From Selaginella moellendorffii (Eukaryota; Plantae; Lycopodiophyta): a stretch of 31,135 bases of DNA. The notes beneath the pieces are model-generated. The model did no database searches. It was not told the DNA's origin and worked only from the letters and a program-made list of their open reading frames with translations. Position 1 is the first letter of the stretch, and each line of letters opens with the position of its first letter. The position numbers and the translations under genes were made by a program. The stretch is taken from positions 26,855-57,989 of the forward strand of contig NW_003314278.1 in assembly GCF_000143415.4 (NCBI RefSeq), given 5' to 3'. Below are positions 17,526 to 30,556 of the stretch, in pieces.

Positions 17526-19900
17526 CTATCTCTGGCTCTCTTTCTTTCGCTTTATCGTCTTCTCGCAACTGTTTTTTTCCTCTTTTTTTTTCTCGAGCAA
17601 GCTCTTGCGCGGCTCTGCGGCTCCTGCTGGTGCTTTGGAACTCACATTTTTTTTCTCTTTTGCGGCAGGCTTCTTTGCGCTGTAAGGGTACTCGGACGGT
17701 GCATGCCACAGGCCCCAAAGTATGGCGAGATGACAAGCGAGCAGTACCAGCGACGAGGTTGCGGTAGATGGATAAACATTCCAAACGCTTTCGATGAGGA
17801 TCAAGAGGAGCAGCCTGGAAAAGCAAAGAGATTTCCATCAGAGTATCAAAACAACGCACTTCGTGACACCGGTCCTGGGGATGGCAATTACTTTACCACT
17901 GCGCACCCCCCCGTCATTTACCTCACTGGAGTCGGCAAAGGCGCCTTCCAAAGTAGATATGGCAAGCTATAAAAGTACCTGACAAAATCACGGGCCACAA
18001 CACAAATGTGTTCTGCCTATATGGCTCATCAAAGTCAAATCGGCATACCAGGAGTAGAACTGGTAGTGAAGGGAGCGCGCAGCAATTATGCCAATAAAAT
18101 TTCCAGTGAAGAGGACTCCCACGACATCTGTACCGGTTTTGTCAATACGAATCAAATCAATCAATATACCGAGAGGGAATTCAAGTTGAAAGCATACGTT
18201 CTTGGCCTAGCGTCTGTCGCCGCGGCAAGCTCCAAGCCTTGCTCCATAACGACAACCGCTTCCCGCTCCTTCGCAGCATTGTTTGTATCCCAGATGCTGC
18301 TGCCATACCCTTCTCGTGCCTGCATTAACCATGGGAAGCCATTTAACGTCAAGCCTGAGTCTTATGCTACGGCAACCAAAATTACTTGCACCACTTGCGC
18401 TGGGAGAAGAGGAACAGCAAGCCTACGTGCAGTACCATCAAGAGGAGAGCGAAGATTTTTGATACGAAAAATCTCTCTGGAACAAACTTGAAGTTCACGG
18501 ACCTGAAAAAGAGGGAAAAAAAACACAACACAACTCCAATATCTGAAAAGTGCACAAGGCAGGCAGATGACCGTACCAGAAGTGAATAAAGACGCGACCC
18601 AAATTAAAAGCCCTTGAAATATATGCTGCAGGGTACGTTGTCAAGAAGGGGAGTCCTAGGAAAACCTGATAACAAAGTCGTTAATGAGGGCTTTTTTAGT
18701 TAGAGCCAAACCGAAATCCAACCTGTATAAGTGCTGCCACCATCAGAGCGACAAAAACACCGCCGAGTGATAGGGCCTGCAAACAAAAAAAAAGTAAGAT
18801 AAAGCAGCCCGACAGAAGCTTTACTTACTTTACACAGGAGCAGCAGAAGCGAGGGAGCATACAGGAGCACGCTCATCTTAACCGAGACGGCAAGACTGCG
18901 GAAAAGCTGGTTTGAGAATGAACAAACACGAACAGATTCGATTCATACCTGAACACAGCCATACCGACATACCACCATTGTGACATGAAGAGGGCGATAG
19001 AAGCATGCGCGAGAGTGATCGCCACACAGTCATTGAATAGGCGAAGGACAAAGATGGAATGTAGTCGCTTTGATAAAGTCAGCAGGAAAATCGCCCACCA
19101 AGGAACCTACTGCACAATTCACATTCCAGAGAAGGTATGTTACACACGCAGTGCCACCAAATTTGACCAACACTCACCACGCGAGTTCTCACGTAAATTG
19201 AAAGAACCAGACCCAGGTTCACCAAGTAAAGAAGCGCAAAGATAACCTGAAGAAAGACTCCATTTCAAGAGAAAGATGAAAAACAAGGAGGCAGCAAACC
19301 TGAGCAGAAGAAACTGCTCCACCAGTGAGGTATCGTATAGCCGAGTAAACATACAGAAACCCTGCCGGGTAGACCAAAGGTCCAGTGTCGCCTCTGAGCT
19401 CCTCGTAGTTTCTTTCGCCAGACAGAAATCCAAACACCTAAAAAACATCATCAAACATGAAGAACATTTTTTCCTTTCTCTCAAGCTCACCTGTGCCATG
19501 TACGCATCCCAGTCGATCTTCGTGTCTAAAATGAATAGAAAAAGCAAGATTCGTGAATCGGAAAAAACAAATCAAGCAAAAGAGTGCCACGAAAAATGCC
19601 CTCAGATCTCATAGCTATAAGAGCATCAAGCGAGCGGTTTTCTTCGCAGACACTCCGAGTAGTGGGAATCAAAAACAGCACCAGCAGCAGCAAGCAGCGT
19701 ACAAGCAATAGGGGGGAGGGAAGGAGTGGCTGCTTTGCCGCTCTAGGTCAGCTCAAATGTTTGTGCATCACCGGGCGATCGATCGATCGAGGAGAAAGAT
19801 CAGTGAACTTACATGAGACATTCTTGACAACCAGAGCGGTGAGTACCGAATCAAACGCGAAGGCGACGAGCGCCACGATCAGGCAGGGCCGCCATTCCAT
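17526..19900 (-). CDS. ALG3: Dol-P-Man:Man5GlcNAc2-PP-Dol alpha-1,3-mannosyltransferase, multi-exon
   Basis: ATG 19900; exon 1 19900-19813, exon 2 19525-19491 ([13 protein letters not shown]). Later exons give [64 protein letters not shown]...[25 protein letters not shown] and [16 protein letters not shown]. The 3' end is uncertain (17526 as read, possibly 17642; see findings). Confidence 0.95.
19598..19776 (-). ncRNA. Intronic box C/D snoRNA/scaRNA (~179 nt) in ALG3 intron 1, predicted guide for Cm34 of elongator pre-tRNA-Met(CAU)
   Basis: Terminal stem GCCC/GGGC (19776-19773 with 19601-19598). Box C GUGAUGC (19771-19765), D' CUGA (19751-19748), C' UUGAUGC (19629-19623) and D CUGA (19605-19602), with a long D'-C' hairpin. 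D guide UAGCUAUGAGAU (19617-19606). The host intron is 287 nt, whereas neighbouring introns are roughly 50-70 nt. Confidence 0.82.
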
Positions 19901-20216
19901 GACGAACCCTAAAACCTACCAAAACCTAAAATTCTAGAACCCTGCGATTATAGTTTAAAAGCTTATTGCTAATAAACACAAAGTTGTGTGAAAATCGGAT
20001 AAGAAGTCGGCATAGCGTTATGGAAGAATGGGGCCACCAAAGTGGTGCACTAGACGAAAAGCGAGACGATTCTATTGCCTGCTTACTTCTCACTTGATCG
20101 AAATCGATCATCATCCATCTTAAATTTGCAATGAACAGAGCAAATCAATAAAAGAACCTCGTCAACTACAAAAGATTATCACGTTTGTTCGGCAGCGAGC
20201 GATCAAACGCACTGTT

Positions 20217-21581
20217 TCATTCCAATCCATTCTTCTCGCACCTGCAAACCAGAAACAATCAAAAAGATTATAAGATCTCTTCTTCCTGCCATTGACACAC
20301 AGTTTGACAGGGCTGGTCGGTAGTTGCTCACAAGACGCCAATTAACACACACCACGACACAGCCCACCACGAAAAAGAAAGCCACGCAAAGAAAAAAAAT
20401 CCAAAAAGCGGAGAGAAAAACACGCACAATAGCTATAGGATCTACAACCCAAAAAGAAAGACACGACGAACAAACAAGCTTGCAAGCTATGGCTATGGCT
20501 GCTACTAGTCTACTTGCGAGAAAAGAGGAAGAGCCACTAACCTTGTGTGTTCGTCGTCCACCTTGCCAGCAACTTTGGAAGTGTGCGCCAGCAGCGAGAA
20601 TCCCCGGCTCAGCTTCTTCCACGACAGATTCGACTGCAAAGGGCTCGAGCTCATCGCACACTTTTCCTGTGAAGTCCCGGGCGTGATCGTCGTCGTGGGC
20701 GATGGCGCCACCACCCCCGTGAGCTCTGGCTCCACAAACACTGCCGACTTCATGTCGATCTGAGCTATCCGGACAGCTCCCATGAGCCGCTCCGGCAATT
20801 CATCCTCGCTCTGCGACTCCACCAGGAAGGCCATGTCCACCGAGACCGAGTTGACGTAGCCGAGAGCCAAGTGTAAGATGTAGCTGGCGACCGTGGAGGA
20901 GCCGATGTCTACGTCGATCTCCAGGTAGTTCGGGCCTCTCCAGTAGCGACAAGTGAGAGCTCGGCCGAGCAAGCACGCCGCGTGGTTGCCGACCGCCGCG
21001 CGGACGATCCAGGGCCCCTTGACGATCCTGTTGATGAGTTTGAATCGGCTGTTCCGGAACTCGTCGTCTCCGTGGATGAACTTGTGGAGCAGCGAGCCGG
21101 GCACGATGGGCTGCTCCACCGCGTAGTAGAACACCGCGCTGTGGTTGTCTCTCCCGGGAACTTGGAGGTTGATCGCCAGGAGGAAAGTCTTGAGACCATC
21201 CCCGGATCTGTGAGCTTGTTCTAGCGACTTGACGATCCGGTTGCCGGAGCTTCTTCCCAGGATGTGGTCAAGCCTGGCCGAGGAGCGCAGCCAATCCACG
21301 CCGACTGGCTTGGAGAGCCAGTCACCCGCAGGAACCTTGGATTTCTTCGCGAAGTAGTTTGCTCCCCGGACCTGGAAGAGACTTCCTGGAGGAGATGCCC
21401 AGCCGCGGCTCCCCCGCTCTAAATCAACCTCTTTGAGAGATCCCCCGCGCCGAGCCTCGCACGTCCAATCCAGAAAGTCCTCCTCCTCCTCGCTGCTTGC
21501 CACGGAGCTGCTCGTCTGCGAGGAGCTTGTCGGTGGGCTGGACAGATCCTCGTCATCGTCTGGCCGGCAATGCAAATTCAT
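20217..21581 (-). CDS. DUF1336 / ENHANCED DISEASE RESISTANCE 2 C-terminal domain protein (EDR2-like)
   Basis: 358-aa ORF 21581-20505 with GWASPPGSLFQVRGANYF..K.KVPA, GVDWL, INLQVPG, FRNSRFKLINRIVKGPWIVR.AVG..ACLLG.AL, NYLEIDVDIGSS and DMAFLVESQ.E.ELPERL.GAVR. A probable last intron 20541-20242 gives ...HTRCEKNGLE* (stop 20217); otherwise the stop is at 20505. Confidence 0.92.
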
Positions 21582-25749: not shown

Positions 25750-27347
25750 ACACATAAATGTTTGTAGGATCTAGTATTAATAATTTTAACTTTTGCAATT
25801 TTCTTCCTAGGGTAGTAAGTCAAAGGTTAGGAGCTACAATAGTCGTCCCATTGTATAGCACAACGAAATTATATAAGAAAAAGAATGATCATAAATTAGA
25901 GATAAATGCAATGATAGAGGGTGCAATAAATTGGGTGGAAAAGAATACCTTCCTACTTGTCCTAGATTGAGCCACCTCAAGTGGCTGATAAAGAGTGATG
26001 AAGAGAGTGCATCATAATATGTTAAAATCACTTACCATTGTATGGAGCCGAATAATCCACCAAATGTTAGTAAAATCCAATGTAAAGTGTGTGGGGATGC
26101 TTTTAAAGGGAAAATATTATACTTGGATCTATAATGACAAATTTACTTTTGTTCCAACCCCATGTTTTTATGAGGAATGAAATTAAGTAGGATTTTTAAG
26201 ATGGTGCTAGTTGTATTGCTATAACATTAATGCTAACTATATGAAGCAGCTTAAAGACACTATAGNNNNNNNNNNNNNNNNNNNNNNNNNNNNNNNNNNN
26301 NNNNNNNNNNNNNNNNNNNNNNNNNNNNNNNNNNNNNNNNNNNNNNNNNNNNNNNNNNNNNNNNNNNNNNNNNNNNNNNNNNNNNNNNNNNNNNNNNNNN
26401 NNNNNNNNNNNNNNNNNNNNNNNNNNNNNNNNNNNNNNNNNNNNNNNNNNNNNNNNNNNNNNNNNNNNNNNNNNNNNNNNNNNNNNNNNNNNNNNNNNNN
26501 NNNNNNNNNNNNNNNNNNATAAAATTTTTCCACGAAGTACATCATTGCACTTGTAAAGGAGTATATAGTCAAAAGAAAGGGTGGTGAGCACATAATTGCC
26601 ATTGAAAACTTTCCTTATTACACATGTCCAGACTTTACAAAGTGTAAGGAATATAGAAGGCCTATGCTCCTTACAAACATATGTACTAAATCTTCATCAA
26701 CACCTTACACCATATACACTAGGCAAGCTTTACTATTGCTAACTTGTAAAAAACTTTTAAAGCTAACTAGATTTTCCAAGATTATCAATATTTCTTCTTT
26801 ACTAATAATATAAACTTAGTATATTTTATATAATTAATAAAACAAATTTCATAGTAGTCTTTTAGATGCGTGATATTGTAGTATGTCACAAGAATATATA
26901 TATTATTATACTGATCATCACCATTGTTTCCATCCGAAGCTAAAAAACATATAGAGTATTTTTTAAAAGTCACAAAATTGAAATTCAGTATCTTGGAGCA
27001 GAATGGTATTTAATACTTTACATACATCCCAATGGTGAATTTCTCTAAGAATAAGTATTGGAGTTAGCATTCTTTTGAGGCAAGGAAAGGGAAGGTGAGT
27101 CTATACAAAGCATGTCTATTGTAATTTTTAAAAACATTAACATTTAAGGAAGGAAGATATATAGGAGTAAGGCCTTTTGTTAAGGTGTTACATGATCGAA
27201 TGAAAAAGAAAGTGACTTCATCAATCCAAATAGTGGCAATTATAGTTAAAGAAGTGGTCTATAACACATCTATAGAATACATTCCTTGGGCTTTTATTGG
27301 TGACATGAAGATTGTCCGTTTAAAGCGTCACTTTTCCTTTTCTAGTA
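25750..27347 (+). mobile_element. Decayed element carrying a SWIM zinc-finger remnant (MULE-like or other SWIM-bearing DNA transposon)
   Basis: 26607-26695 reads NFPYYTCPDF then, after a frameshift, AYAPYKHMY*IF, matching SWIM CxCPDF..CKHxY with Cys>Tyr and Trp>stop changes. Boundaries are approximate. Confidence 0.45.
26266..26518. other. Assembly gap (N run)
   Basis: N bases. Confidence 1.
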
Positions 27348-27532
27348 NNNNNNNNNNNNNNNNNNNNNNNNNNNNNNNNNNNNNNNNNNNNNNNNNNNNN
27401 NNNNNNNNNNNNNNNNNNNNNNNNNNNNNNNNNNNNNNNNNNNNNNNNNNNNNNNNNNNNNNNNNNNNNNNNNNNNNNNNNNNNNNNNNNNNNNNNNNNN
27501 NNNNNNNNNNNNNNNNNNNNNNNNNNNNNNNN
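27348..27532. other. Assembly gap (N run)
   Basis: N bases. Confidence 1.
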
Positions 27533-29674: not shown

Positions 29675-29773
29675 NNNNNNNNNNNNNNNNNNNNNNNNNN
29701 NNNNNNNNNNNNNNNNNNNNNNNNNNNNNNNNNNNNNNNNNNNNNNNNNNNNNNNNNNNNNNNNNNNNNNNNN
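29675..29773. other. Assembly gap (N run)
   Basis: N bases. Confidence 1.
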
Positions 29774-30556
29774 NCAGACTTGGGCTTGCTAGCCCCGAGA
29801 ATGGTGTCTCCACCACTCAACCTTTGCATTCGATCCAAGTGCTCCATGTGTCCGATCCCAAGACCGACACCCCAAGGTACCATCGACGTATCAGCTCGTT
29901 ATGCTAAGGCCATGCCCCTTTACCTTGGTCACACTGGTGGTCTAACACCACCTACATCACAGTCCCATCTCTCAAGGGCTGGGCCATCCGTCCATGAGTG
30001 ATCATTCTGGATCCACTCCTTAGCATCTTTAGGATGCCCACAGACATGGGGAATAGCCTTCCCCAATATCCCTTTTCCGGTCTTCACCAAGTCCCTTTCT
30101 ACCCATGGCCGTGTTCGCTAACACTGCCACTGGATCAAGGCCCACCGGCCCGGCCACTAAGTCCCACTATCCTCTAGGACTTCCTCACCGTGTGACTGTG
30201 TCCTTGGTCACCACATCAGAGGGCTACTCCTCTTCCTTTCCATAGTCTGGGACTTTGGGACACCATTTCGGAACACCGTAGCCCTACGCGGGCCTCATGG
30301 GTACTCTCCCTGCCTTCTGCCTTTGGGTGCTCTAGCCATGGGCTTAGAGTGAGGTTCTATTGAGCCACGCCTGGTATCCAAGTAGGTAGTGCCACCCACA
30401 CTTGGATTGGGAGCATCGACCATTCGATCTCCCGGGGGAACTAGAGCCGGCTCTTTAACACTTCACCAAGCTACCCCGTTTGTCGGTCCGTATTCACTCT
30501 AGTCTTGGACTTCCCAGTGGTCAGTTCATCACCCAACACTGGGTATGGCTTTCCTG

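Follow-up and report, generated by a model that had tools for sequence, protein, structure and literature searches.

The first intron of the ALG3 gene of Selaginella moellendorffii carries a predicted box C/D guide RNA of 179 nucleotides (nt). The gene lies on the minus strand of a 31,135-nt stretch of contig NW_003314278.1 (hereafter the window), in which the predicted RNA occupies positions 19598-19776. We consider, with a probability of about 0.6, that it is an intron-encoded guide and the Selaginella functional counterpart of human SNORD97/SCARNA97, methylating cytidine 34 (C34) of the unspliced precursor of elongator transfer RNA (pre-tRNA-Met). This assignment is based on the anatomy of the unit, the splicing of its host, an intron-derived RNA contig that stops near the predicted 3' end, a guide core identical to that of the human RNA, and the invariant GCU with which plant tRNA-Met introns begin.

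Architecture of the box C/D unit

Read on the minus strand from 19776 to 19598, the unit has the layout GCCC-G-GUGAUGC-ACAAACAUUUGAG-CUGA-(118 nt)-UUGAUGC-UCUUAUAGCUAUGAGAU-CUGA-GGGC. A complete C/D architecture on the host strand had been proposed at this place by an earlier model-made reading of the letters (the sequence-only reading), and dissection of the strand recovered all of its boxes and both arms of its stem. The 5' arm of the terminal stem (GCCC, 19773-19776) is complementary to the 3' arm (GGGC, 19598-19601). The resulting stem of 4 base pairs (bp) is separated from the C box by the single G and adjoins the D box with no intervening nucleotide. The C box (GUGAUGC, 19765-19771) agrees with the consensus RUGAUGA at six of seven positions, the final A being replaced by C. 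The D' box (CUGA, 19748-19751) is located 13 nt after the C box, these 13 nt (19752-19764) being the D' guide ACAAACAUUUGAG. Likewise, the C' box (UUGAUGC, 19623-19629) is located 17 nt before the D box (CUGA, 19602-19605), and the 17 nt between them (19606-19622) form the D guide UCUUAUAGCUAUGAGAU. The unit thus has the features by which a small nucleolar RNA (snoRNA) of the box C/D kind is recognized: C and D boxes, a terminal stem, and internal C' and D' boxes at guide-length spacing.

The internal spacer of 118 nt (19630-19747) has at its base, beside the D' and C' boxes, a stem of six uninterrupted base pairs formed by GAGCGG (19743-19738) and CCGCUC (19637-19632). Such a stem was present in 178 of 20000 shuffled sequences (0.9%), and one natural allele disrupts one of its pairs. 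Compared with shuffled sequence, no significant fold was found for the whole unit or for the spacer (z = -1.07 for the latter), and the hairpin that the sequence-only reading had placed in the spacer is not supported. The pyrimidine content of the spacer is 61%, rising to 74% in a 66-nt core. The whole intron is also at 61%, and a content as high as this is found in 9% of window segments; the bias is therefore not distinct from the remainder of the intron.

The D' guide gave only 6-bp partial matches when compared with a limited set of sequences, and no target was found among them; it is therefore treated as an orphan. It should be added that its 3' end, UUUGAG, is complementary to CUCAAA, which is one base off the CUCAUA of the anticodon loop. 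This alignment is out of register and would place C34 at D'+3. An internal duplication of the half that contains the guide may have left the D' guide behind as a relic.

Guide core and predicted target register

Human SNORD97 and SCARNA97 have been demonstrated experimentally to guide 2'-O-methylation of C34 (Cm34) in elongator tRNA-Met (Vitali and Kiss 2019, PMC6601510). The guide of SCARNA97 was read as the reverse complement of the published probe, which gives ...GUGAAGGGUAAGAUUAUGAGAU-CUGA, to be compared with ...UCUUAUAGCUAUGAGAU-CUGA in the window. The last eight guide bases together with the D box (UAUGAGAU-CUGA) are the same in both RNAs and stand in the same register, so that ...AAGAUUAUGAGAU-CUGA in human and ...UAUAGCUAUGAGAU-CUGA in the window share 12 identical bases. 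In both guides, the U at D+1 faces G30 and the G at D+5 faces C34. The D+5 base of the window guide is G19610, which lies opposite C34 of the target ...GUCUCAUA|GCU..., where the vertical line marks the exon-intron junction. The position of D+5 and the existence of both human and archaeal C/D RNAs for Cm34 of tRNA-Met, the latter cited in the sequence-only reading, were both borne out. The two guides diverge exactly opposite position 38. The human GAU pairs with A38-U39-C40 of the intron-less tRNA, whereas the window AGC(UA) would pair with bases of the tRNA intron; A19616, G19615 and C19614 face the intron GCU.

A real box C/D snoRNA might have its true target in ribosomal RNA (rRNA), small nuclear RNA (snRNA) or messenger RNA (mRNA), with a coincidental match to tRNA-Met. 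Most plant C/D RNAs do guide rRNA methylation, and the D' guide is left with no assigned target. However, each guide has a chance of about 1e-6 of an 11-nt in-register match to the one tRNA site known to be served by C/D guides in both humans and archaea, and the guide core is identical to that of a validated tRNA-Met guide. By our own arithmetic, about 1.5e-3 equal matches would be expected in the roughly 6.5 kilobases that rRNA and snRNA comprise. This explanation is accordingly regarded as quite unlikely. A literature search with the guide string returned unrelated primers only, and no match to the guide was present in the supplement of an Arabidopsis RiboMeth study.

When the unit region was scanned against Rfam under permissive conditions, the only C/D family aligned was the 3' end of archaeal sR41 (CUAUGAGcgCUGA), over 15 nt at 19600-19614 on the minus strand. 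The E value of 5.9 is at chance level. This end of sR41 contains the same CUCAUAG complement at two bases from box D, in the same anticodon-complement register, and from its sequence sR41 may also be a tRNA-Met guide.

Predicted pairing with the intron-containing precursor

Metagenomes were scanned with an unbiased 5'-exon pattern (AGCGCGTAGRTCTCATA), which gave 120 loci (L001-L120). Fifty-two of these are plant-type elongator tRNA-Met genes, several of which were called tRNA-Met(cat) with an intron by ARAGORN in intron mode. They contain 25 distinct introns of 10-14 nt, and all 25 start with GCU (for example, L010:88-172, L037:5315-5399 and L096:1496-1582). The fourth base is U in 13, A in eight, C in two and G in two, and the remainder varies. 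The sequence-only reading had given GCUA as the intron start; its first three bases hold throughout, and its A holds in 8/25. Because GCU is invariant and the fourth base is not, three intron pairs can be taken as secure and the fourth as species-dependent. To our knowledge, no reason for the invariant GCU has been published. Introns of tRNA-Tyr were considered as a control for this conservation, but the single plant-like gene obtained is too few for the purpose.

With each of the 25 precursor introns, the window guide forms one G.U pair and 10-12 Watson-Crick pairs, that is, 11-13 contiguous pairs. Box C/D snoRNAs are characterized by a guide with at least 10 nt of complementarity to a stable RNA and the modified base opposite D+5, and the window guide agrees with this on the plant precursors sampled. 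With the spliced sequence CAUAAUCC, only the G.U pair and seven others remain, giving eight contiguous pairs. The precursor is therefore the better substrate, in agreement with the earlier suggestion that the guide pairs across the junction. In silico, the duplex spans the exon-intron junction, as does that of the precursor-specific guide of Haloferax type, with AGC opposite GCU in all 25 introns. If the full 17-nt guide pairs, the Selaginella intron should begin with GCUAUAAGA. This predicted start resembles those of the observed introns GCUUAAGAGUA and GCUAAAGAGUG.

The guide might instead be a genuine SNORD97-type guide acting on spliced, mature tRNA-Met as in humans, the complementarity of AGC to the intron being incidental. 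The human system acts on an intron-less tRNA, the eight-base guide core is common to both RNAs, and the plant candidates reported so far were aligned to spliced tRNA. On the other hand, the G.U pair and seven further contiguous pairs available with the spliced sequence are fewer than the usual number of about ten, and where the window guide departs from the human one, the three bases concerned are exactly those complementary to the invariant GCU. Action on the mature tRNA thus seems unlikely for this RNA.

Two further observations were made on the tRNA genes. The tRNA-Met introns fall into two classes, ending in ..GAGU[UAG] and ..GAGAA. In addition, the locus L013:1838-1920 contains an intron-less tRNA-Met-like gene that appears to carry an insertion of about 25 nt in the T arm (GTTCGAGATTACCGTTACCGGTTTCCACGTGACCCTTGCACAGAGCA), which, judged from its sequence, could be an intron at a non-canonical position in a non-plant eukaryote. 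ARAGORN found no tRNA gene in the window, either with or without intron mode.

Host intron and RNA evidence

The host was identified as ALG3, as the sequence-only reading had it, by matches to Pfam PF05208 in exon 3 (9.1e-15) and in a 3' exon (7.5e-12). All parts of the gene described here are on the minus strand. The coding part of exon 1 (19813-19900) starts with the ATG at 19900 and is followed by intron 1 (19526-19812, 287 nt, GT..AG), exon 2 (19488-19525, 38 nt), intron 2 (19435-19487, 53 nt) and exon 3 (19297-19434). Exon 2 was placed from the sequence and the layout of reads, intron 2 from the read layout, and exon 3 from its Pfam match and read joints. Intron 1 is 5.4 times as long as intron 2, close to the roughly fivefold excess noted before, and carries the C/D unit on the host sense strand. 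In reads aligned to 19250-19990, removal of intron 1 (joint 19525/19813) was seen in 21 raw RNA-seq reads of one run (X30) and in contigs of two others (X8 and X5). The first mates of the raw stranded reads are all on the plus strand; given the usual design of stranded libraries, the transcript is therefore minus-strand, matching the C/D unit. The 3' end of the unit is 72 nt upstream of the 3' splice site of intron 1. Such a distance is reportedly the classic place of vertebrate intronic C/D RNAs (Hirose and Steitz 2001).

The 179-nt unit, whole or partial, was found in 15 runs from eight named studies. Two likely-RNA runs, X8 and X1, both from one study, contain it whole, and 13 more contain it in part. 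In X8, a separate intron contig of 203 nt (19601-19803) has a depth of 11.5, the spliced mRNA contig having a depth of 174.5. The intron contig is joined to neither exon, and 19526-19600 is uncovered. In contrast, the unspliced transcript in X5 is a single contig reaching 30 nt into both exons. This means that the X8 contig comes from an excised and 3'-trimmed molecule rather than from pre-mRNA. Its 3' end, at 19601, is within 3 nt of the predicted 3' end of the RNA. The contig reads as a trimmed or partly trimmed form of the candidate snoRNA.

A few reads of X30, at a depth of 1-3, lie on the 3' part of intron 1 (19525-19599), downstream of the snoRNA, and two of them carry the G of the other allele at 19539. 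They could represent an intron 3' fragment or use of an alternative acceptor. Single-base differences at 19334, 19539, 19667, 19712, 19729, 19739 and 19904 distinguish the window from runs that carry the labels of other organisms (B and D), and some variation occurs within organism A as well. At about 98% identity, these are probably due to a second haplotype or to close strains, not to other species.

Orthologues of ALG3 were sought by a representative search with exon 3 and by word-index searches with the exon-3 open reading frame (ORF) and with the closest full-length hit; the matches of the last search were all from angiosperms. In all three other plant loci that cover intron 1, the intron is at the identical codon (Y|TKIDW). 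It measures 89 nt in L124, roughly 95 nt in L122 and over 160 nt in L121, and the surplus length in Selaginella is about that of the 179-nt unit. A comparison of intron 1 among plants had been put forward as a check on the prediction. No tRNA-Met guide was found in the four plant ALG3 genomic loci that were fetched, and the three that cover the intron (two angiosperm genomes and one Logan contig) are without the C/D RNA. Because of this absence, the link of the RNA to an N-glycosylation gene is incidental. A further sequence, P0137, was rejected as a source of intron 1, as it is an intron-less transcript.

Upstream of ALG3, a single long ORF on the minus strand (20508-21581) encodes an EDR2 C-terminal domain (PF07059, 1e-79); its end is separated from the start codon of ALG3 by about 600 nt. 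Runs of N mark assembly gaps in the window at 26266-26518, 27348-27532 and 29675-29774.

Assessment of the assignment

Several results weigh against a functional guide acting on the precursor. No Rfam family matched the whole window at gathering thresholds, and the unit region gave only chance-level matches at E values up to 10. No homology of the RNA body to SNORD97/SCARNA97 was detected outside the guide and boxes in the Rfam scans, the similarity being limited to 12 nt. Since no family matches, membership in the class is based on the features that define its function, not on homology of the body. The C box ends in C rather than A. The plant precursor sequences were sampled from metagenomes and not from Selaginella, so that the Selaginella intron is extrapolated from them. 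The 5' end of the X8 contig is 27 nt upstream of the predicted 5' end, so that a discrete species of 179 nt is a prediction. In the raw reads of X30, the depth over 19600-19799 is zero; this is a weak negative, because only about three reads would be expected at the ratio seen in X8. We assume, moreover, that this library is blind to non-polyadenylated RNA. The other carriers of the unit (X5 and X25) are about 98% identical to the window, and for this reason the conservation signal is uninformative.

Finally, there is the published treatment of plants. In 2019, SNORD97/SCARNA97 candidates, whose existence the sequence-only reading had suspected, were described from just two plants, Arabidopsis and rape (PMC6601510, Suppl. 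Fig. S3C). There, Vitali and Kiss described the plant antisense elements as "invariant" and aligned them to spliced tRNA, and the article (PMC6601510) does not discuss the plant tRNA intron. In view of that alignment, angiosperm guides may target the mature tRNA. No follow-up to these candidates was found in the literature searched.

The question whether the unit might be non-functional, either motifs brought together by chance or the decaying relic of a snoRNA, within a long intron, can be considered in terms of expectation. A loose pattern, in which a C box is followed by a D box at a distance of 40-260 nt and the two are joined by a 4-bp stem, is frequent, with 4.8 per window in simulations and five seen. 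The lack of an Rfam match and of X30 reads would also fit a relic, as would the two alleles, which give no sign of selection (the 179 nt contain four differences, and the chance that all four fall in the spacer is about 0.2). However, when the loose pattern is narrowed by requiring a D' box that follows C by 9-22 nt and a C' box that precedes D by 9-22 nt, only 0.0075 are expected per window, and the single occurrence is that at 19776-19598. Multiplied by the probability of the in-register 11-nt guide match (about 1e-6 per guide), this gives about 1e-8 per window, or about 0.002 over 250,000 windows. The 15-mer AGCUAUGAGAY-CUGA occurs once in the window. Viral contigs served as a negative control: they contain this 15-mer 57 times by chance, and none of the 57 is accompanied by a C box and terminal stem. 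The intron-only RNA contig ending near the predicted 3' end also argues against a relic, and we regard a non-functional unit as very improbable.

Proposed mechanism

For the assignment as a guide of precursor methylation, the following course of events, including assembly of the ribonucleoprotein particle (RNP) and methyl transfer, is what we infer. The RNA would be transcribed within the ALG3 pre-mRNA. After splicing, exonucleases would trim intron 1 to a snoRNP core formed by the C/D kink-turn and the 4-bp stem, to which fibrillarin, NOP56, NOP58 and an L7Ae-type protein would be bound. Through its 17-nt guide upstream of box D, the RNP would then bind the anticodon loop of elongator pre-tRNA-Met. 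The predicted duplex would begin at G30 (G.U), take in U31-A37, and cross the 5' splice site to the first three or four intron bases (GCU, probably GCUA). C34, opposite the fifth guide base from box D, would receive the 2'-O-methyl group to give Cm34. Because bases of the intron are required for the duplex, which also lies over the 5' splice site, methylation would have to precede tRNA splicing and the RNP would have to leave before the endonuclease acts; the order would be methylation, release of the RNP and then splicing by the endonuclease.

The same geometry raises the possibility that the RNP binds the precursor mainly for another purpose, namely to hide the 5' splice site and so to time or block the splicing of tRNA-Met, or to control the production of tRNA fragments. 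The A37|G splice junction lies within the predicted duplex, and in humans Cm34 governs cleavage by angiogenin, not growth (PMC6601510). Nevertheless, the placement of C34 at D+5 is the canonical methylation geometry, common to a proven methylation guide. There is only a small chance that a chaperone role of this kind is the main one.

If methylation of the precursor is accepted, a wider and tentative proposal can be made, for which we would give somewhat worse than even odds. In all land plants, the intron of elongator tRNA-Met might be kept because its invariant GCU is half of the docking site for a SNORD97-type guide, so that Cm34 would be intron-dependent and made on the precursor. The invariant GCU, within introns of otherwise variable sequence, provides a second and independent leg for this idea. 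If true, it would constitute a eukaryotic parallel of the Haloferax system and would answer the question why plants retain this intron besides that of tRNA-Tyr. The present locus is a concrete plant candidate, differing from the human guide at exactly those bases that decide between a spliced and an unspliced substrate. Should the precursor idea fail, the locus would still add a new lycophyte representative to the functional class of SNORD97.

Comparison with known systems

Few cases of RNA-guided methylation of a tRNA anticodon have been proven in eukaryotes, C34 of human tRNA-Met being the first. According to a 2026 review, it is unknown whether such a mechanism exists in plants; the same review lists intron-dependent modification as a possible reason for a retained intron. 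Two known modifications depend on a tRNA intron in other ways. Pseudouridine 35 of tRNA-Tyr is also an anticodon-loop modification that needs the intron, but there a protein enzyme recognizes the precursor. In archaeal pre-tRNA-Trp (Cm34/Um39) the intron is likewise required, but is itself the guide. For the window RNA, in contrast, the guide would act in trans and the tRNA intron would belong to its target.

The Arabidopsis and rape candidates of the 2019 report resemble the window RNA in being predicted box C/D RNAs with a D guide directed against the tRNA-Met anticodon loop. Human SNORD97 and SCARNA97 (SNORD133) share with it the encoding of a C/D RNA in an intron and the U facing G30. They also contain a long pyrimidine-rich internal region; the spacer of the window RNA is likewise long, its pyrimidine bias not being distinct from that of the intron around it. 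Their host genes are EIF4G2 and LARP4, compared with ALG3 for the window RNA. In Haloferax volcanii, according to the account given in PMC6601510 (citing Joardar et al. 2011), a box C/D sRNA acts on elongator pre-tRNA-Met. It is alike in guiding Cm34 of elongator tRNA-Met and in having the intron-containing precursor as its substrate. It differs in being an archaeal sRNA working with archaeal proteins, in the bulge-helix-bulge type of the tRNA intron, and in not being hosted in an intron of an mRNA gene. The closest known system is therefore human SNORD97/SCARNA97, and the closest analogue with respect to the substrate is the Haloferax C/D sRNA.

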